Shown here in pieces: positions 899-40,896 of a DNA stretch of 40,896 nucleotides. Each line of letters begins with the position of its first letter. Within the stretch, counting starts at the first letter, position 1. The DNA comes from Octopus bimaculoides. Taxonomy: Eukaryota. The stretch lies in contig NC_068989.1 of assembly GCF_001194135.2 (NCBI RefSeq), forward strand, positions 85,657,860-85,698,755, in the 5' to 3' direction. The notes beneath the pieces are model-generated. The model was not told where the DNA came from, searched no databases, and saw only the letters and a list, made by a program, of their open reading frames with translations. Made by a program: the position numbers and the translations under genes.

Positions 899-22302
<21,404 letters not shown>

Positions 22303-30240: not shown

Positions 30241-30519
30241 ATACATTTCACTATTCTTTGTGTGCTTTACCTTCCATCAAGAATAATGCTTGCCAGAGTT
30301 GGCGTTACCTTGGTTTTAAAATACCAATTGATTTTAGACACTGTACCAATGGAAACATTCAACAATCCATCAATTTGCCTTATAACATGAAGCATTTTAA
30401 CTTATTTCCAGCATGGAAAACGAATGTTAAATGATGAGGATGATATCTGCAAAAAAGTAAAACAGAAGGCTATATCATGAAGTGCAAGACATATGTAACA
30501 CATATGAATATATATATAC

Positions 30520-30609
30520 ACACGAGAATAGTTTTGAATTTATTATTGCCAATAGGAAAAAAAATTTAAATAAAAAGTGGTGTCTCCATTATTTTGTCCA
30601 ACCCCTGTA
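30520..30609 (+). mobile_element. Orphan terminus of the same Tc1 family (TIR 30579-30607 plus TA)
   Basis: ggtgtctccattattttgtccaacccctg-ta matches the TIR at 21490 in the same orientation, with different internal sequence. Confidence 0.75.
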
Positions 30610-31084
30610 TACACACACACACACACACAAATATATATACATATACATGTGTGTGTATGCATACATGCATGTATGTATACACATAGACACACACACATGC
30701 ATGCACACACACACACACACACACACACAATCATATCTATCTCACTTTTTCTATCCTGCTCTCTGCTTTGCTAAGAACAACCATCCTAACCCGATCACTG
30801 ACACCTTCTTCTGTTTCCAATACCACCACCACCACCGCTGCTGCCACCACTGCCGTCGCCGCCACCACCACCACTATCACCTCTCTACTAAACTACATCA
30901 CCACATCACTGCTACATCACTTCACCACAAAACCTCTATTACACCACTGTGCCACCTTCCCCTGCCTCTTTCTTCAACCACAGTTACCACTAGCATATCA
31001 CCACCACCACCACTACCACATCCCACTCTGTAGAGGTGTTGGTGGTAGTGGCATTAGTGCAGCTGGTAAGGTCAAATGGCTATC

Positions 31085-31264
31085 GACGTCATTTGTCAGA
31101 AGACTATAAATTGAGCGAGATTCCTCATGTCAAATTGCATTTCGATTCACACTTGATGTGAACAATTGCCTCTCGAGACATCTGCTTTGTCTAAACATTC
31201 AAAGAACTTAGAGCATAAACACCACTGAAATTACTGCTTTTTGGTCAAACAACCGGTCAGCAAG
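31085..31264 (+). promoter_or_regulatory. Candidate promoter and non-coding first exon of the peroxidase-like gene
   Basis: GACGTCA 31085-31091, TATAAAT 31105-31111, AAG|gttcgt donor-like site at 31264/31265 followed by T-rich DNA. An upstream exon is implied by the acceptor at 33680. Speculative. Confidence 0.25.
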
Positions 31265-33680
31265 GTTCGTCTCACAAGATCTCTCTCTTCATTTCAGAAG
31301 TCTTTTTGTTATTTTTTCCTTTCAATTTTTGGTGATTTTTTTCTTTCTTTTTATCATTTCTCTTTCTTTTCTATTTTTAAAGTTTACGTTTTCAATTCCT
31401 TTTGTATATATCTCCCTTAAGTATATATCTTCACAAACATTTAAAAGGAAAAGTATAATTAGTTCTGGGCCTCTTTTATTTTCCATATTTTTATTGTTAA
31501 GAAGTTCACGTTACAATCATGCAGCTTTGGCTTCAGTCCAATGCGTGACACGTTGGGCAAGTGTCTTCTCCAACAAAGTCTTCTACTATAAAGCCTTATG
31601 AATGGATTTAATAGATGGAAACTGAAAGAAGCCCATCATACAGGTAAATTTGTGTGTGTGCAATCGTGCAATCATGTGTGTGTGTCTGAAATTGCACATG
31701 CATGTGTGTATCTTGGTGAAAGGTATCAATGACAACAAAAGCTGCAAAAATCAACATTAACGTATGAACTCCCTTGAGACACATCAAGTTAGATACATTC
31801 CCTTTGCACTTTCACTATCAAAAACACAATTAATCTGTGATTGGCCCTTTAGAAACCAGTGAATATTAATACTATTATTCACATTTTGTACTATAGTATG
31901 TCAACGACCAAGTTATACATCGAGACACACAATTATATCTCTAGATACAGTTGTATGGGGATAAGCAAGCTTTTTTGAGTCATGTCCACTTTGACTCTCT
32001 TTTCTTTTTTACATTTGTCCATGACCATCATCATCATCTTTCATCATTCTTTATTGTCCACTTTTTGATGCTTATATGGTTCAGATAGAATTCATTGAGG
32101 GGAATTTTCTGCAGCTGAATGTCTTTCCTAGTGCCAACCCTTGCATGATTCCAAGCAAGGTAATACTGGAAACTAAAAAAACCTTGCTTTTATGATGGTG
32201 CTGTTCATTTACAACCATCACCTGATTTCTAAAGAAGGGTACACCCAAACACATTTGCATACTTACATATATCATATACATATTTATATATACAATAGGC
32301 TTCTTTCAGTTTCCGTCTAGTAAATCCACTCAGAAGACTTTGGTTGGTTTGAGGCTATAGTAGAAGACACTTGCTAAGCAGTGGAACTGAACCTAAGACC
32401 ACANNNNNNNNNNACACACACACACACACACACACACACAAAGGTATGAGAAGTACTGGTATCCAGAAGACTGAAGGTGGCAGGTAAGGTTATGTAAGAG
32501 CCACTTTCTATACCCATCCCTCCACCTTAGTGCCTTTCATACATATTATTCCACCTCCCACTCTTCCCACATATTCATTCCTTACTTTCTTATCTCTTCC
32601 TATCCCTCTCCTACTCCTATCCCATTCCTCTCATATCTTGACCACCGACTACTCTAGAGTTTCTACATGATTGCTTGGTTTGTCTGAAATAGCATCAAGT
32701 CTCCCTCAGATTACTTCTTAAAATAAGGTTACAATGGACATTGTAAACCAAGAATTTGTAAGATGATAAATATTGGTTGGCGCTGGAAGGGTGCCACACA
32801 ATTCCTTACATCAATGTTTGAGGAAAATTAGCAGAACAAGAAAATATCCGAACATAAAAACAATCCATTTATTCTGTATGTACAAAAATGTAGACCTCAG
32901 GACAATCAGTAACCGGGTCTGGTGTGGAAGCAGCAAAGTCAGAGTCGATCATACTCTGTGAAGGCATTCTTCACACTAGTCCAGCTATAACGGAGCTGGT
33001 CAAATACCGAGCTGGTCAAATAACGGTCAGCAGCAGAGGCGAACAGAGAGCGGCTGAGAATACATCCGCCTAGTTCAGGGGCTGTGTCTTGAGTCTGAGA
33101 TACAAGAGAACTCTGCTGCTGCTGGTTTTCTGCACATGCACATCAGGGACCTTTTGGCAGGCCTTCCAGAAGGTTCCAACCCTGTGCATGCGTGCTGGAG
33201 ACCCTCAAAATGACGTCACTACAAATTAAAATTAGATGGATTGGTCATTCATCTACTCATCAGGGTTAATCTGGGGATGAATATTATTAACTACAAAACA
33301 ACAACAATAACAATAGCATCAATGGTGCCACTATTATCTTCAAGCAGTCTAGAAATATCTACAACACTCCTGAACACGATAACATCGATAATGTTGTTGT
33401 TAACTTCAAACCAGTCTTGAGTGAGCTGACAGTTGATCAAAAACACTCCAGCCTGATATTTTCATGTGTTCAGCAAAGCCAGGGCTACATTATTCAATGC
33501 CATTTCTTTCAGACTAGGATTTGACGTGGATTTGGTAAATATTTCTAGCTAGTCAAGATTATTGATGGTGATAATTAAGTTGATGACAATGATAATTAAG
33601 TTGATGATGATTTATGTTGATAATGATGATGATAATTACCAGTCAACTGCTAATTGACCTGCTCTCTCTTCCCCCCACAG

Positions 33681-33721
33681 GATGTTGTTGCCACAGTTGT
33701 TGCTCATATCTACTTTATTTG
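33681..33721 (+). CDS. Peroxidase-like gene, first coding exon (ATG 33682; [13 protein letters not shown], signal-peptide h-region)
   Basis: ctctctcttccccccacag| acceptor and G|gtaagt donor; hydrophobic N-terminus; phase 1 fits the next exon. Confidence 0.75.
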
Positions 33722-34519
33722 GTAAGTATTCACCCTTTGTTCATTGGGATCACATAACTGCAGGGGGAAGGACTAGAGCTACCCTAGAAAAGCATCTGTA
33801 AGATATGCATGGTCGTGGTGGGGGATTGTGAGGGTATTTTGAGAGATATATTCAGGGTATGTTGGGATTGTGGTGCTCTTGAGAAGTATATTCAGGATGT
33901 GATGAGGCGGTGGTAACACTGAAAGATATATTCAGAGTGTTTGCAGCTGTGGTAGTGTTGAGGGGTATATTCAGGGTGTACCAGGGTGATGGTACCCTTC
34001 AGATATATATTCAGAGTGTGTACTAAGCTGATGATACTCCTGATTAGGTAAATTCAGATGGTGCTGAGATGGTGGTGACTTTGAGAGGTATATTCAGCAT
34101 GTGCTAGGGTGATGGTACCCATAAGGGGTATGTTCAGGGTGTACTGGTGGGATATTAATAAAATTGACGCATATATTCAGGGTGTTGGGTTGGTGGTACC
34201 CTAGAGAAGTATATCAAACATATAGCAGGGTGGTGGCTGTTGTGATGCTGACGACTGATGATGAAAATTATGATGATGGAGAGGATGAGGAGAATAATGT
34301 TTATGAAAGAAATGATGATGATAATGATGGTGGTTATGATGATGGTGGTGATGATGATGTGATGATGATATTTGTTTTTATGTTTTTTGCAGTATGGAAT
34401 ATCCAAGCTGGTTACTAGTAAGTGTTAAAACTAATTCTAATTATTTATTAATTGTAGTTACTCTCTATTATTCTAATTAATTTTGAATCAAAGGGAACTA
34501 CTGCCACCTGTTTAATATA

Positions 34520-34592
<73 letters not shown>

Positions 34593-36002
34593 GCGCATAC
34601 ATACATACATACATACATATATACACACACACACATATATATATATATATACATATAAAAGTTAATAAAGTATTATTACCATTATTAAAAATAACAATAA
34701 TAATAAAGTGGCCAGCAAGTTTAACCTAAATAGCAAAAAAAGTATACAAATAGATTAAGGTACCGAAATACCAGCTTGCTAGAAATAGAAGTCAAAACTC
34801 CAAGGCCACAAATTTCTCACTATTAAGAAACACGCACGGTGAATGTAGCAAATATAAGAAAAATAGGCCTTGCCTTTGCATAAACCACAGAGCAAGAACA
34901 GATATCTTGGTATCAATTGATTTTGCCTTTTGTTCGTTATTACTTAAGGATCATCAATCAAGTTTATTGTATTCATCTATTTTTCAAAATATTCATTTTA
35001 TTATACTATGCGCGTTTATTCACTTGAATGCCGGTGAGACATTCAAAAGGGAGGAAGTGAAATTTAAAATTTGATAAAGATATCTGTTCTTGCTTTGTGG
35101 TTTAAACAAAGGTAAGGCACCTTGGGCAATTGTCTTCTACTATAGCCTCGGGCCAACCAAAGCCTTGTGAGTGGATTTGGTAGACGGAAACTGAAAGAAG
35201 CCCATCGTATACATATGTGTGTGTTTGTGTTTTGTGTTTGTTCTCCCAACATCACTTGACAACCGATGTTGGTGTATTTATGTCCCCAAAACTTAGCAGT
35301 TTGGCAAAAGAGACTGATAGAATAAGTACTGGGCTTACAAAGAATGAGTCCTGGGGTCGATTTGTTTGACTAAAAGTGGTGCTCCAGCATGGCCACAGTC
35401 AAATAACTGAAACAAATAAAAGAATAAAAGAATATATACATATGTATATGACAGGCTTCTTTCAGTTTCCGTCTACCAAATCCCCTCACAAGGCTTTGGT
35501 CAGCCCGAGGTTATGTAGAAGGCACTTGCCCAAGGTGCCACGCAGTGGAACTGAACTCAGAATCAAGTGGGTGGTAAGCAAGCTACATACCCCACAACCA
35601 TTCCTATATTTACTTATCCATACCTGGTGGTGTTGAATAATATTTCCTCTAAGACTTCTACGTTTCATTTATTTCAGCCCAAAGTGTTATGAAGATGAAC
35701 TTACCTTTGTGAATTTTCATGGAAAGCAAAGGGAATTTAGGAGTGCAAATGGTACTTGTAATAATCTGAAGAACAAGTACTGGGGTGCCGCCTATAATGA
35801 ATATTCACGTCTCATTCCACCGGCTTATCATGACGGTCAGTGAAGAAAGACACTCAAATGTCTCCATTTTTTCCTTTCCTGAATTCTGACCGAATTCTCT
35901 ACTCTCTTCTGCTAACTTTTTTGCTCTCTCTCTCTCTCTCTCTTTCTTCTTCTTCTTCTTCTTCTTCTTCTTCTTCTTCTTCTTCTTCTTCTTCTTCTTC
36001 TT

Positions 36003-36033
<31 letters not shown>

Positions 36034-36053
36034 TTATTATTATNNNNNNNNNN

Positions 36054-36117
<64 letters not shown>

Positions 36118-36516
36118 TCCACCTTAGCGAAGGCAGAGGTATTGTTTTCAGTCACGTTTGTTTGTTTGTTTGTTGGTTCGTGGACAAGACATCTCAAGAA
36201 CTGCTGGATGGATTTGGATGAAACTTTCAGGGATGTTTGGCCTCACGACTGGCACAAACTGATTAGATTTTGGGATCAATTCGGTACCAGACAAGGATTC
36301 TTGATTATTTTCCCTGTTTTTTGTTACTTAATTTTTGAGAGCGGTCAGGTTCATTTTTAGTATTCTCATTTGCGAGAGCAGTTGAGTTTATTTTAGATAT
36401 TCTCATTTTAAAAATCATCTCTTCTTAATCGTTGACAGGACGTTGGTGTTGCCTTGGCGGAGGTTTGCGCTCTCCGAGTGCTCTTGTTATTACTATTATT
36501 ATTATTATTATTATTA

Positions 36517-36566
<50 letters not shown>

Positions 36567-37400
36567 GTTATTATCATTACTTTTATTATTATTTTCATTC
36601 TACCTCTTTACTTTTCAGGTTATGACAAACCAAAAATATATGGAAAGAGTGGAGGATTATTACCAAACGCTCGTGTTGTTGGGTGCAATCTATTTAGCGA
36701 ACCTTTCAACGCAAAATGTCTGTCAAAACTGAGTCTTTTTACTGCATTCTTCTCTCAGGCGATTTCCCATGATTTGTCTGACACAAGTCGACCATCAAGT
36801 AAGTTTTTGTTTAAAGAGGACTTTGAGAGAACATAGTGACAATTTGGTTAAGGTTTGAAGGAAAAATATGTGCTTGAAATCTGAAAACCATTTCTTCTTT
36901 ACATAGTTATTTTAGCTTTAATTTACTGTATTTGATGGCATAAAAGACACAAAGGGTATATTAAATGCACCCCAATGCTAGCAGCGCATATTCAAGATAA
37001 CATGTTTTTCTTTCACTAAAGCATTTAATATAGGCTCAACTTTGTATATAGAACCCCAGGTGATATTTTTGAGTTATTCTTTTTTATAAAAAGTTCATCT
37101 TATGTGCCATCAAATACAATAATCCATTATCGTGATGAATGGTCCAAAATATAAGAGCTAACAAAAGTATTCCAAATGCAGGTGCAGTTTGTTAGTTAAT
37201 TTGTCACATGTATTCTATTTCAAGACAGTTATGATTGTGTCATTGCTACTGTTCACTGAAGTGCATTATTCTAGTTGTCTGTCAATTGCTATTGTTGAAA
37301 ATAAAAATAATCAATATAAACTAAATATGATAATTATCAATCAGATATAATCTTAACAGATGAGATATGATCACTGTACATGAAATATAATTCCTAATAA

Positions 37401-37455
<55 letters not shown>

Positions 37456-37574
37456 TATATAAATATTAGATTGGAGCCTGGTGTTGCCATCCGGTTTCAC
37501 CAGTCCTCAGTCAAATCGTCCAACCCATGCTAGCATGGAAAGCGGATGTTAAACGATGATGATGATGATGATGA

Positions 37575-37610
<36 letters not shown>

Positions 37611-40600
37611 TGAGACCAAATATAACTATGACAGATCAAATATACTCACAACCGATCAGATGTGACACAGATCTGTTACAATAAAGAACACTGAAATCCA
37701 TTGGAGATTTTTGATAAAAGATATTTATTTTTATTGAAAACAAAAAAATATTTATGGTACTTAGGAATGACAAATATTGAGATAGTTCAAAGCCCGTGTC
37801 CAGTCTGATGTTTGCCATCTACTGTCTATCAGAAGTGGCTAAAATATGCTGAATATATAGTGGTGGTCTTGCTCAGAAAAAGTGTGCCAAAAAGGAAATT
37901 ACTGTTACATCCAGTTCCATACAAAGTCTTGAATGGTCTGATTTTTTTAATGATGTTGGTAATATTTTAGTAAATCACAATCATATTCTTGAGTTGCTTT
38001 TTGTATTGGATAAAGTGATTTGAGTTCAATTGCTAAATATTCCTGCTACAGAGCAAATGAGATATTGATCGATCAAATAAAACTAATACAGACCAAATAT
38101 AATTACATGAGTATCAAACCCTGAACATTACTGTCTTAAATCCTCAGAATCATAGGATCAGTTATCCTATTTCCATGGTGTATAATGACTAAGAATGCAA
38201 TGTTCCTCCTGTACATGATGTAATTATTAAAATGAAAGATGAAATGACACCACAATAGATCAAATCTAATCACAAGTCTAATAACATAACGGCAGATGAA
38301 ATATTTACATTAAAAAATAACAAACAAACAACAGGGAATTTAATCTGAAATTGAACAAACATTTTTTCAAATTTGTAAAATATGTTTTTACTATTCTTCT
38401 ATGTATTCCACAGATATTGATTGCTGTGGTGGCCCATTGAGGTAAGTGTTCAATTCTTTCTGCATTGCATCTTGTAGCATGGATGTGATTAAGTTTATCC
38501 AGTTGATATTTCTGATGATGACGATGACAACGATGATGGCGACAACAATGACAATGACAACAACGATGGAGAGACACTGAAGATGATTGTTGATGGTAGT
38601 AGTATTAGGATGATGATGTTGAAAATTGTGAAGTTGATTGTGTTGGTGGCAATGGTGATAATATGATGATGATTAGTAAAGTCACTTTGTTGCTGATGAC
38701 AATACTACTGCTGCTTAGCATACAAAGTGAGGTGTATGGCTCTCTCTGGTAGGTATGTTAATTAACCAGACCAAACTGACTATGAATTCATACCAGAGCT
38801 CATCTCTTTCTTGTCAAAGACACTTAACTCTCAAACATGGCTTCCACAGAGAAACAGCAGCATCACAGAAAATACTCAATAACATTTAGTATACATCACT
38901 CTACGTTCAAAGTTCAAATTGTACCAACACCAAACTCATTCGTTTTCCATCTTTGCACTTCATTTTACTTTATTTTATATCATTTTTAAACACTGTTATG
39001 TATATTCTGTATGTTTTAATACTTTTATATATTCGCACTGCATCAATTTTTCTGCAACTGATAATCCAGCATCTCTTTTTAATTTGGACTATTAATAACT
39101 TTTTCACAACCAAGTCTTCACAACACACATTTATTTATTTGTTAGTAACTCATCATGAAGGTAGAAACACTCTTCTTATACATGATTGCAATAATATGAG
39201 AATGCAAACGTTTAAAAATAAATTCAGCACCATATGCTAATATTCTAAAGACCCTTTTTCTCCAAAGAGCAAATGGATAGAGATATCATTACATCCATTG
39301 CAGTGGATGTAAAAAAAAAAAAATTTAAAACTGGTACTCCATTGGTTATGACAATAAAGGTTCTGCTTGTGAAATTAACATGCAAGTGGCTGAGTACTCC
39401 ACAGACATGGATACCCTTAACATAGTTCTCAGGGAGATTCAGTGTGACACAAAATGTGACAAGGCTGGCCCTTTGAATTACAGGTACAATTGGGGTTTTT
39501 TTTTTTTGCCAGCTGAGTGGACTGGGATAATGTGAAATGAAGTGTCTTGCTCAAGGACATAACATGCTGCCAGGAATTGAACTCACAGCCCTATGTCTAT
39601 GAGCTGAATACCCTAACCACTAAAACATGTACCTTCACCAGAGGATACAGTATTCTAGCAGGAAAGGAGAAACAATTAATATTGACATTTTGCAGTTACA
39701 TTTCAAGAGATGGCCTGGCACTGGCATTGAATTTTGTTTTAAGTATTAGCAAATGGCATTAGATTTTGTTTTAGGTATTAGAATAAAGCATTAGATTGTT
39801 TCGACTTTTGCACCTTGATATTATAGTAAAGGGATTGGAAAAATATTTCCAATTTTATAACACAATCATGGCAAATAAACAAAGGTGTGTTGTGAAAAGT
39901 TATTGATTATGTGGTGCCTGTCTGCCAGGAATTTACCAGGAATTGTTATCACATGCCTTCTGTTAATCAAACAAAACAGATCATCTGGCATGGATCTGGG
40001 TCAAGGAATGATAGAAAATTGATGCTGCATCTTTATAATGTTAAAAAAAAAATTATATATATGCATTGTTTTATAGATTTTTAACAATTGTCTTAATTTT
40101 ATGTTTATTTCCAGGAACAAATCAATATGCTTTCCCATAGTTTATAGCAGTCACTGTCACCTGGATAAATGTAGTGGTTACTACTATTCATATTATGGCT
40201 TCCCGAATTACTACCAAAATGGTCGTTATCTTCTTCGTTATCCTTCTCATTATCCACTTCATTATCCAACTCATTATCCACCTCGTTATCCTCTTCATTA
40301 TCCCATTCGTTATCCCCTTCGCTATCCACTTCGTTACCCATTTCATCAACAATCAATTCATATCAGTCAGAAAAACAACCATAACTTAAACTTGCATCTG
40401 AATCAAAATCATCACCACCACCATCACCATGGTGACCATTATCTTGACCTGCACTTTTACAACCAACACTATCCCCATTATTACCCCAGCAAAACCCCTT
40501 ATAATTACCATCTTGGGCCATATGGGAAAAAATTCAGTGAATCTCACAGTCAAACATCACATAGTCACACTCGGGTGTCTCATACTCGCACTCAGGTATC

Positions 40601-40896
40601 TCATACTCATTCACACTTACTGCATCCTTTTGGATTACACAAGCATGTACATTTATTGCACCCTCACTCTCACTTGGCCCATCTCCACACTCACAGTCAC
40701 GCATCACGCAAACATGAGGAGAACTTAGCTTCTGCTCACTTGCACATAACTCATGCTCAATCACATTTAGCACAAGCTCACTCACACTCTTTATATCCTT
40801 ATCGAGGGTTGAGTCCCACTCAAATCCATGCATTGCACCAGCATGTACATTTATTGCACCCTCACTCTCACTTGGCCCATCTCCACACTCACAGTC
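33682..40896 (+). CDS. Secreted animal heme peroxidase-like protein with a His/Tyr/Pro-rich low-complexity region; 3'-partial (about 404 aa visible)
   Basis: join(33682-33721,34393-34417,35678-35835,36619-36798,38414-38441,40115->40896); all GT-AG, phases 1,2,1,1,2 consistent. Translation: [154 protein letters not shown]... This matches the family motifs YRxxDGxCNN, WG, RLLPPxYxDG, LPxARxVS, GQFxDHD and CC..CFPI in order. Confidence 0.9.
33841..34235. repeat. About 40-bp minisatellite, about 10 copies, conserved core TATATTCAG
   Basis: Unit starts at 33841, 33881, 33921, 33960, 34000 and onward. Confidence 0.85.
34393..34417 (+). CDS. Peroxidase-like gene, 25-nt microexon (V)WNIQAGY(Y)
   Basis: gttttttgcag| acceptor, TA|gtaagt donor; supplies exactly the phase 1-to-2 bridge needed and completes a signal peptide ending IQA. 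Confidence 0.75.
34867..35118. mobile_element. MITE-like element with about 49-bp terminal inverted repeats
   Basis: 34867-34916 gccttgcctttgcataaaccacagagcaagaacagatatcttggtatcaa versus the reverse complement of 35071-35118; few mismatches. Confidence 0.75.
35678..35835 (+). CDS. Peroxidase exon PKCYED...[33 protein letters not shown](G)
   Basis: catttatttcag| acceptor, G|gtcagt donor; peroxidase N-terminal motifs; absent from ORF track. Confidence 0.93.
35925..36114. repeat. Compound microsatellite (CT)n(CTT)n(TTA)n spanning a 10-N gap; other long tracts at 13451-13497, 16180-16250, 22800-22845, 23030-23125, 34520-34655, 36490-36580, 37405-37460
   Basis: Seen directly. Confidence 0.95.
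36115..36487 (+). mobile_element. HINE/DINE-1-like non-autonomous Helentron element
   Basis: 5' subterminal repeat acctccacc with partner ggcagaggt, (GTTT)n core, 3' subterminal repeat ttggcggaggt (36454-36464), terminal hairpin gcgctc-tcc-gagtgc; inserted in (TTA)n. Confidence 0.7.
36619..36798 (+). CDS. Peroxidase exon with distal pocket (LPNARVVG...FSQAISHDL)
   Basis: cttttcag| acceptor, A|gtaagt donor; distal Gln (36756), His (36768) and following Asp (36771). Confidence 0.92.
38414..38441 (+). CDS. Peroxidase 28-nt microexon (N)IDCCGGPL(R)
   Basis: gtattccacag| acceptor, AG|gtaagt donor; conserved CC; phase 1 to 2. Confidence 0.82.
40115..40896 (+). CDS. Large exon: NKSICFPI followed by Tyr-rich, (H/R)YPx x9, His7 and His-rich repeats; open to window end
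   Basis: gtttatttccag| acceptor; codons 40116-40895 (260) contain no stop; repeats have periods of 12 and 198 nt (multiples of 3). Confidence 0.85.

Follow-up and report, generated by a model that had tools for sequence, protein, structure and literature searches.

Gene structure, peroxidase similarity and the Octopus maya transcript

The 3′ part of a 40,896-nucleotide (nt) stretch of Octopus bimaculoides DNA (RefSeq assembly GCF_001194135.2, contig NC_068989.1, positions 85,657,860 to 85,698,755 of the forward strand; the whole stretch is called the window below) contained a peroxidase-like gene whose reading frame continued into a tail rich in His and Tyr. Six exons on the plus strand (33682-40896), with GT-AG splice sites and agreeing phases, were joined into an open model of 404 codons and 404 amino acids (aa) that was interrupted by no stop or frameshift (Table 1). 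This confirmed the six phase-consistent exons and the signal-peptide-like start described in the original prediction, which was made by reading the DNA alone. The donors read GTAAGT in four cases and GTCAGT in one, and every acceptor ended in AG. An in-frame TGA was located at 33655, 27 nt 5′ of the ATG, and an in-frame TAG at 40074 was intronic, upstream of the exon 6 acceptor. The hydrophobic core at residues 2-15 showed a mean Kyte-Doolittle value of 1.91, the first 20 residues resembled a signal peptide by rule of thumb, and the putative cleavage site IQA/GYY satisfied the -3/-1 rule as judged by eye. The micro-exon 2 was called from splice sites and phase alone, without homology or transcript support; its length of 1 mod 3 was needed because exon 3 must stay in frame.

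Pfam analysis of the model revealed a match to An_peroxidase (PF03098; E=8e-24; 84.5 bits, the cut-off being 25), in which protein residues 42-155 covered profile positions 1-114 of 530 in one stretch, and all of the family motifs previously listed for the gene were present. Since this single unbroken stretch crossed the exon junctions 3/4, 4/5 and 5/6, all three were supported. Model residues 38-134 aligned end to end with the light chain of myeloperoxidase (MPO; 104-114 residues; e.g. PDB 1MHL chain A). In this alignment SQAISHDL was placed over GQLLDHDL of MPO, so that the distal Gln and His were kept, as was the Asp after the His (Gln91, His95 and Asp96 in MPO numbering). The residue aligned to MPO Asp94, which forms the haem ester, was Ser. 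A haem-ester Asp is typical of the mammalian and peroxidasin types and not of the peroxidase family as a whole. The exon structure, the family membership of the N-terminus and the open frame were observed directly in the DNA, and it is supported, through the first 114 profile positions only, that the N-terminus genuinely belongs to the animal haem peroxidase family, as a protein of the secreted type.

The motifs of the catalytic core, namely the Ca-loop D-x-S-x-x-YG, the distal Arg/Glu of the REHNR type and the proximal His of the R-F-G-H type, were found in none of the six frames of the window by a regular-expression scan with patterns of the family, by Pfam on the three frames of exon 6 and by tblastn, the sequence covered ending at 40896, inside the open frame. 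No peroxidase core exons or paralogous exons were found elsewhere in the window. A frameshifted peroxidase remnant in exon 6 was considered and rejected, as the other two frames were blank in Pfam. On the visible evidence, the product as it appears in the window would be unable to bind haem or to catalyse. Because the family similarity stopped in the middle of an exon, the break was attributed to an event at the DNA level inside exon 6 (repeat expansion or rearrangement) and not to exon shuffling. Of the two readings offered by the original prediction, a peroxidase fragment co-opted into a structural protein fitted these results better; the enzyme fused to its own substrate was possible but not borne out as stated, with 114 of 530 profile positions and no core motif in the window.

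The gene could be connected to a transcript of another octopus. In a study of the Octopus maya oviducal-gland transcriptome, Table 5 gives reverse transcription quantitative PCR (RT-qPCR) primers for TRINITY_DN16362_c4_g6_i1, named "chorion peroxidase" (Ptx), with the sequences CGGCTTATCACGACGGTTAT and GCATTTTGCGTTGAAAGGTT and a reported product of 116 bp (PMC8976471). On the spliced model, the forward primer matched positions 209-228 of the coding sequence at 19 of 20 bases and crossed the exon 3/4 junction (223/224; 35835/36619 in the window), with three mismatches on unspliced DNA. The reverse primer matched 36700-36719 at 19 of 20 bases, and the amplicon predicted from the spliced model was exactly 116 bp. 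As judged from this primer fit, the window gene and the O. maya transcript are orthologs or very close paralogs of each other. The agreement of 38 of the 40 primer bases also suggests that the source of the window is an Octopus near O. maya. Because the primers and the amplicon fit the spliced model, the ortholog or close paralog is transcribed and spliced at exon 3/4, in the sister species and at egg-laying. The same report lists the transcript among the top differentially expressed ones, up at fertilisation and egg-laying and down in senescence, with a stage effect in RT-qPCR of P=0.0161 (PMC8976471). This peak lent independent support to the earlier guess of an egg cement or an oviducal-gland product; for the beak or radula role that was also suggested there was no support, the sole expression evidence being that from the O. 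maya oviducal gland.

According to Table S2 of that report, the best BLASTx match of the O. maya transcript was PERC_AEDAE with E=3.4e-9, and a DUOX2-like transcript in the same table reached 4e-141 (PMC8976471). The value of 3.4e-9 fits a transcript with a short peroxidase-like piece only. The DUOX2-like transcript was listed among the top stage-dependent transcripts, and matches to PXDN (PXDN_HUMAN, PXDN_DROME) and PERC appeared under the enriched Gene Ontology term "hydrogen peroxide catabolic process" in supplementary file 1 (PMC8976471). The DUOX2-, PXDN- and PERC-like products would be candidate cross-linking partners. The O. maya data are given as public (transcriptome shotgun assembly GJEO00000000; SRR13512014-17, BioProject PRJNA544090) (PMC8976471). 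If the architecture is shared between the two species, the marker published for O. maya as "chorion peroxidase (Ptx)" possibly encodes no active enzyme, and its annotation would have to be corrected.

The His/Tyr-rich tail and the surrounding DNA

The reading frame did continue for at least 250 codons past CFPI, as had been claimed, with 252 codons in one exon, and the earlier hand counts of about 57 His and about 28 Tyr proved exact. These 252 residues contained 57 His (22.6%), 30 Leu (11.9%), 28 Tyr (11.1%), 26 Ser (10.3%) and 20 Pro (7.9%), together with 3.2% Gly, 3.6% Ala and only three Asp and three Glu (2.4% together). The motif HxH occurred 24 times and YP 12 times, the pI was 9.5 and the GRAVY value -1.05, and the computed charge fell from +64 at pH 5 to +10 at pH 8. 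In the ten [H/R]YPx units Tyr-Pro was constant and the third base of the Pro codon varied (CCT/CCA/CCC). All repeat periods of the tail (12/24, 6 and 21) and the spacings of 147 and 198 were frame-preserving. The array probably continues in the 3′ direction, because the second copy of the repeat with 198-nt spacing (40829-40896) is cut by the window end.

No Pfam family was found in the tail, and no fold was predicted for it by AlphaFold2 from the single sequence (pLDDT 42.7, pTM 0.15). An exhaustive HMMER search with the 260-aa open reading frame (ORF) of the last exon revealed no homologue among 1.84 billion representative proteins, a library without close relatives of the species; the 13 weak matches were all chance tetrapeptide repeats, the best at 3e-6. 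A search of the tail and exon 4 against metagenome contigs found nothing. A word-indexed protein search with the whole model and with its N-terminal 187 aa gave no match at E<=1e-3, a result that says nothing of octopod orthologs: an NDUFS1 exon from the window, used as a database control, matched only exon-sized fragments at no more than 86% identity, which showed that close relatives were not in the database.

The frame of the tail contained no stop in 260 codons. The two remaining sense frames were interrupted by 10 and 7 stops, near the 7.1 that dinucleotide shuffles of the DNA predicted, and 0.05% of the shuffles yielded a zero-stop frame (P about 5e-4). This frame was not chosen post hoc, because the homology-supported acceptor at 40115 and CFPI fix it. 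The best internal GT sites, 40596 (CAG/GTATCT) and 40432 (ATG/GTGACC), scored 1.5 and 1.4, compared with 2.6-7.6 for the five donors used, and exon 6 contained no AATAAA poly(A) signal. The second-longest open stretch of the window, treated as non-coding simple sequence, served as a control. It was a His-rich stretch of 190 stop-free codons at 30461-31030 on the plus strand, about 2.6 kb 5′ of exon 1, with 33 His (17%) and 9.5% G, built on (AC)n/(ACC)n/(CAC)n and without gene context, and an overlapping second frame was open for 140 codons at 30687-31106. Its three frames contained 0, 2 and 12 stops, so that two were depleted, and 15% of its length was perfect microsatellite; the corresponding values for the tail were 0, 10 and 7 stops and 0%. 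No other G-poor stretch of 780 nt in the sequence attained zero stops. Overall, the support for a coding tail was moderate, and translation of the tail as part of the peroxidase-like protein was considered probable, at about two in three.

The antisense strand of exon 6 was also unusually open, with a 99-aa ORF starting at an ATG (40534-40833, minus strand), two stops in 260 codons of one frame and a translation rich in Asp and Glu. It was most likely the mirror of the CAY/TAY-rich sense codons, and the ORF was rejected as a real gene on account of the two stops over the region, no Pfam match and no splice or homology anchor.

Table 1. Coordinates of the peroxidase-like gene model and of the repeats in its last exon (positions in the window)
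Feature	Position	Strand	Description
Exon 1	33682-33721	+	ATG and hydrophobic signal-peptide core; donor TTG/GTAAGT
Exon 2 (25-nt micro-exon)	34393-34417	+	VWNIQAGYY, end of signal peptide; acceptor ttttttgcag/, donor CTA/GTAAGT
Exon 3	35678-35835	+	PKCYEDE...WGAA...RLIPPAYHD(G); Pfam, MPO light-chain alignment, O. maya forward primer
Assembly gap N10	36044-36053		In intron 3, between (TTC)n 35944-36032 and (TAT)n 36054-36115
Exon 4	36619-36798	+	GYDKPKIYG...LPNARVV...; distal Gln, distal His and next Asp; Pfam, MPO alignment, O. maya reverse primer
Exon 5 (28-nt micro-exon)	38414-38441	+	(N)IDCCGGPL(R); acceptor ccacag/, donor GAG/GTAAGT; inside the unbroken Pfam stretch
Exon 6	40115-40896	+	Acceptor tttatttccag/; runs off the window end
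Exon 6, start	40115-40139	+	(R)NKSICFPI, end of the peroxidase similarity; match stops at profile position 114, protein residue 155
Exon 6, remainder	40140-40896	+	252 open low-complexity codons rich in His/Tyr/Leu/Ser/Pro
Ten tandem 12-nt units	40224-40343	+	Encode [H/R]-Y-P-x
(CATCAC)n	40410-40430	+	Encodes His7
21-nt repeat, 2.6 copies	40556-40609	+	(V)SHT(H/R)TQ-type HxH units
Repeat with 198-nt (66-codon) spacing, copy 1	40631-40698	+	
Repeat with 198-nt spacing, copy 2	40829-40896	+	96% identical; cut by the window end

Two extra AG dinucleotides were present early in exon 6, after its pyrimidine-rich start, at 40140 (cccatAG/T) and 40150 (tatagcAG/T). The AG at 40150/40151 may be an alternative acceptor, whose use would preserve the frame and remove 12 residues. 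The assembly gap in intron 3 hides no coding sequence, because both the family alignment and the O. maya primer cross the exon 3/4 join without a gap; the join itself aligned ungapped to the family (YHDG/YDKP to YEDGFSLP of MPO). Between the (TAT)n/(TTA)n runs at 36054-36115 and 36487-36593 of the same intron, an insert at 36113-36490 (CCTCCACCTTAGCGAAGGCAGAGG...) appeared unique and looked like a fragment of a mobile element that had landed in a microsatellite, with the assembly gap at its left edge. In intron 2, two inverted-repeat pairs were found, at 35142-35238/35418-35514 (97 nt, 84%) and 34867-34908/35077-35118 (42 nt, 90% complementary). The first pair consisted of two opposed copies resembling a short interspersed nuclear element (SINE), an element that is very abundant in Octopus genomes; further copies of this kind were seen in intron 5 (about 39380-39620) and in other parts of the window.

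The window as a whole was AT-rich animal DNA in which microsatellites and SINE-like copies abounded. Upstream of the peroxidase-like gene, exons of NDUFS1 (the 75-kDa subunit of mitochondrial complex I) were located on the plus strand at 908-1237, 17005-17424 and 18472-18756, with Pfam matches to PF10588 (E=3.6e-12) and PF00384 (E=4.8e-28). Assembly gaps lay in the NDUFS1 span at 13974-14167, 16337-16656 and 16994-17003, the last of which adjoined the ORF with the PF00384 exon. A 153-aa ORF on the minus strand (20937-21398) contained HTH domains of Tc1/Sleeping-Beauty-type transposases (HTH_28, E=8e-6; HTH_SB, weak) and is probably what remains of a transposon that lies between NDUFS1 and the peroxidase-like gene.

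Proposed function and rival explanations

The reading that we tentatively favour, with a probability of roughly 0.4, is that the gene encodes a secreted matrix protein of the octopus egg envelope or egg stalk, composed of an N-terminal peroxidase relic and a cross-linkable His/Tyr tail. The gene would be derived from a peroxidase gene in which the catalytic body was swapped for the repeat tail. Its product would comprise the signal peptide, about 115 residues corresponding roughly to the MPO light chain and the CC...CFPI strand, and at least 252 disordered, almost acid-free residues, and the oviducal gland would secrete it onto the eggs as a matrix or cement protein. The tail, if translated, may stay in solution in acidic secretory granules, where it would carry a strong positive charge (computed as +64 at pH 5). 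At the pH of seawater it would lose charge (+10 at pH 8) and could condense through Tyr/His contacts, as do the GHGxY peptides of squid beak, in which His deprotonation and Tyr stacking drive coacervation (PMC11931252). Separate full-length peroxidases, using H2O2 derived from DUOX, might then fix the condensed tail through dityrosine or His cross-links, and metal-His coordination could act as an added or alternative means of fixation; the relic N-terminal module would not itself be catalytic. Hardening by peroxidase is known for insect chorions, as cited in the O. maya report (PMC8976471).

A bolder version of this scheme, which we consider quite improbable, would derive an octopus His/Tyr egg matrix protein from a broken chorion-peroxidase gene and make of the light-chain-like module a leader or dock that recruits active peroxidases or a separate heavy-chain-like partner. 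The protein would then be a functional but non-homologous octopod counterpart of the histidine-rich beak proteins (HBPs) of squid, which octopus genomes are reported to lack.

Several results weigh against the egg-matrix reading. The distal Gln/His/Asp triad was intact, which is odd for a module without a catalytic role. The MPO light chain is not an independent domain, and a stand-alone relic may for this reason not fold. The open frame reached the window end, so that a catalytic core further 3′ could follow. The transcript evidence covered exons 3 and 4, upstream of the tail. The shuffle null was too lenient, and the significance of the tail frame was downgraded because the apparently non-genic control at 30461-31030 passed the same test (0/4000); the same open control indicated that His-rich open frames can arise at this locus without selection. 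The frame-preserving periods were weak evidence, since trinucleotide repeats are common in the introns of the locus. Additionally, the weak BLASTx match in O. maya may mean only a short contig, because the N50 given for the assembly is 593 nt (PMC8976471).

Alternatively, the catalytic core may resume past 40896. The gene would then encode a full-length chorion-type peroxidase with a giant His/Tyr insert between CFPI and P-x-x-DP...C-x-x-F-x-RS, and enzyme and substrate would reside in one polypeptide, as in the first idea of the original prediction. Conservation of the distal residues and the good score of the N-terminal module suggest continuing selection on the catalytic fold, a light-chain-like piece is not expected to fold on its own, and the repeat array was still going at the window end; "chorion peroxidase" is also the label used by the O. 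maya authors (PMC8976471). We nevertheless regard this arrangement as unlikely, given that no core motif was present in any frame of the 40.9-kb window, that the equivalent of MPO Asp94 was Ser, and that the O. maya transcript matched PERC_AEDAE at only 3.4e-9, where a 530-position domain would normally score far better, though the contig may be short. To our knowledge, it would also be without precedent for the compact peroxidase core to contain an insert of more than 250 residues. It is similarly unlikely, in our judgement, that the tail lies outside the mature protein, exon 6 being short or alternatively spliced (at 40432, at 40596 or beyond the window) and the open frame a by-product of G-poor, CAY-rich DNA. 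The control, open for 190 codons with its 33 His and 9.5% G, shows what such DNA can produce; degenerate repeats of the (CAT/CAC) type were present in opposite orientation in introns 1 and 5, the His7 run was plain (CATCAC)n, and the GT sites at 40596 and 40432 were conceivable as donors. However, the control differed from the tail in its frame stops and its microsatellite content, and no further G-poor stretch of 780 nt was free of stops. No donor was found within about 100 codons after CFPI, and both internal sites scored below all five used ones; even if they were used, 105-160 codons of the tail would still be in the protein.

The least probable rival is a partial copy of a peroxidase gene in decay, either a transcribed pseudogene or a very young chimera, which a rearrangement would have broken in exon 6 and joined to repeat DNA and which would lack a selected function. 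The abrupt end of the family similarity within the exon does point to a break in the DNA, the tail had no homologue anywhere it was searched for, one haem-linking residue was lost, and the locus was crowded with transposon remnants and SINE-like copies. These features contrast with five introns that all keep canonical sites, with two intact micro-exons and with 404 codons free of frameshifts and stops. Conservation and use are further indicated by an ortholog in another species that is spliced alike, stage-regulated and among the top differentially expressed oviducal-gland transcripts (PMC8976471).

Octopus eggs are hardened and cemented by oviducal-gland secretions, the proteins of which are essentially uncharacterised. 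If the tail is real, the favoured egg-matrix protein would be a concrete candidate for the matrix of the octopus egg envelope or stalk, which would be cross-linked and switchable by pH or metal. It would also clearly exemplify how repeat expansion within an exon can make a structural protein out of what is left of an enzyme gene, and its [H/R]YPx and HxH repeats would offer a new His/Tyr chemistry for work on coacervate and adhesive peptides.

Comparison with known systems

A literature search in the contexts of beak, radula, egg case, dityrosine and oviducal gland brought up no account of a His/Tyr repeat fused to the stump of a peroxidase, and literal peptide strings had no match in the papers searched. 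Among the known systems closest to the octopus protein were the insect chorion peroxidases (Aedes PERC, Drosophila Pxd) and other secreted PF03098 proteins, which it resembled in the putative signal peptide, in the ordered N-terminal motifs and in the distal Gln/His. PERC_AEDAE is the best Swiss-Prot match given for the O. maya ortholog, which is likewise expressed in an egg-coating organ at egg-laying (PMC8976471). In contrast to chorion peroxidase, the octopus model has only profile positions 1-114 of 530, and the regions of the Ca-loop, the distal Arg/Glu and the proximal His are absent from the window; the equivalent of MPO Asp94 is replaced by Ser, and His/Tyr repeats follow CFPI where the family has P-x-x-DP...C-x-x-F-x-RS.

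The retained piece corresponded almost exactly to the light-chain module of MPO. In MPO, the light chain arises by cleavage of a full precursor and remains associated with the heavy chain and the haem, whereas no equivalent of the heavy chain was visible in the octopus window. Peroxidasin and a chiton radular peroxidasin-like protein with a C-terminal chitin-binding domain are alike in that peroxidase-family and matrix-interacting sequences are combined in a secreted protein belonging to a hardened extracellular material (PMC6351634). However, proteins of the peroxidasin type keep a complete catalytic domain together with folded modules (LRR/Ig/vWC or chitin-binding) (PMC6351634), while the 404-aa octopus model yielded in Pfam only a partial An_peroxidase, and its partner was a low-complexity repeat.

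The tail shared with the squid HBPs (DgHBP-1/2/3) its presence in a predicted secreted product, its disorder, its richness in His and Tyr and its short tandem repeats. In the squid proteins the charge is set by His deprotonation near the pH of seawater, with coacervation and then cross-linking as the expected behaviour (PMC11931252). The octopus tail would be expected to behave alike. The HBPs differ in being proteins of 15-18 kDa, rich in Gly and Ala, with GHGxY and GAGFA repeats and without a peroxidase module (PMC11931252); the octopus tail contains 3% Gly, has a pI of 9.5 and is built from [H/R]YPx, His7 and HxH-rich repeats of 7 and 66 residues. Both HBPs and suckerins have been reported absent from O. 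bimaculoides (PMC9068888). No homology to HBPs was detected in the HMMER search of 1.84 billion representatives, in which no HBP sequence was compared directly, and the only expression evidence, for the O. maya ortholog, came from the oviducal gland and not from the buccal mass. By its composition and repeats, the octopus protein is not a squid HBP.

The byssal and foot proteins of mussels include mfp-1, with its decapeptide AKPSYPPTYK, and the preCols, with their His-rich flanks. Although both taxon and organ differ and the likeness is one of description, with no homology shown, these proteins of a secreted underwater holdfast combine tandem repeats that contain Tyr-Pro with metal-binding stretches rich in His, as the octopus tail would.

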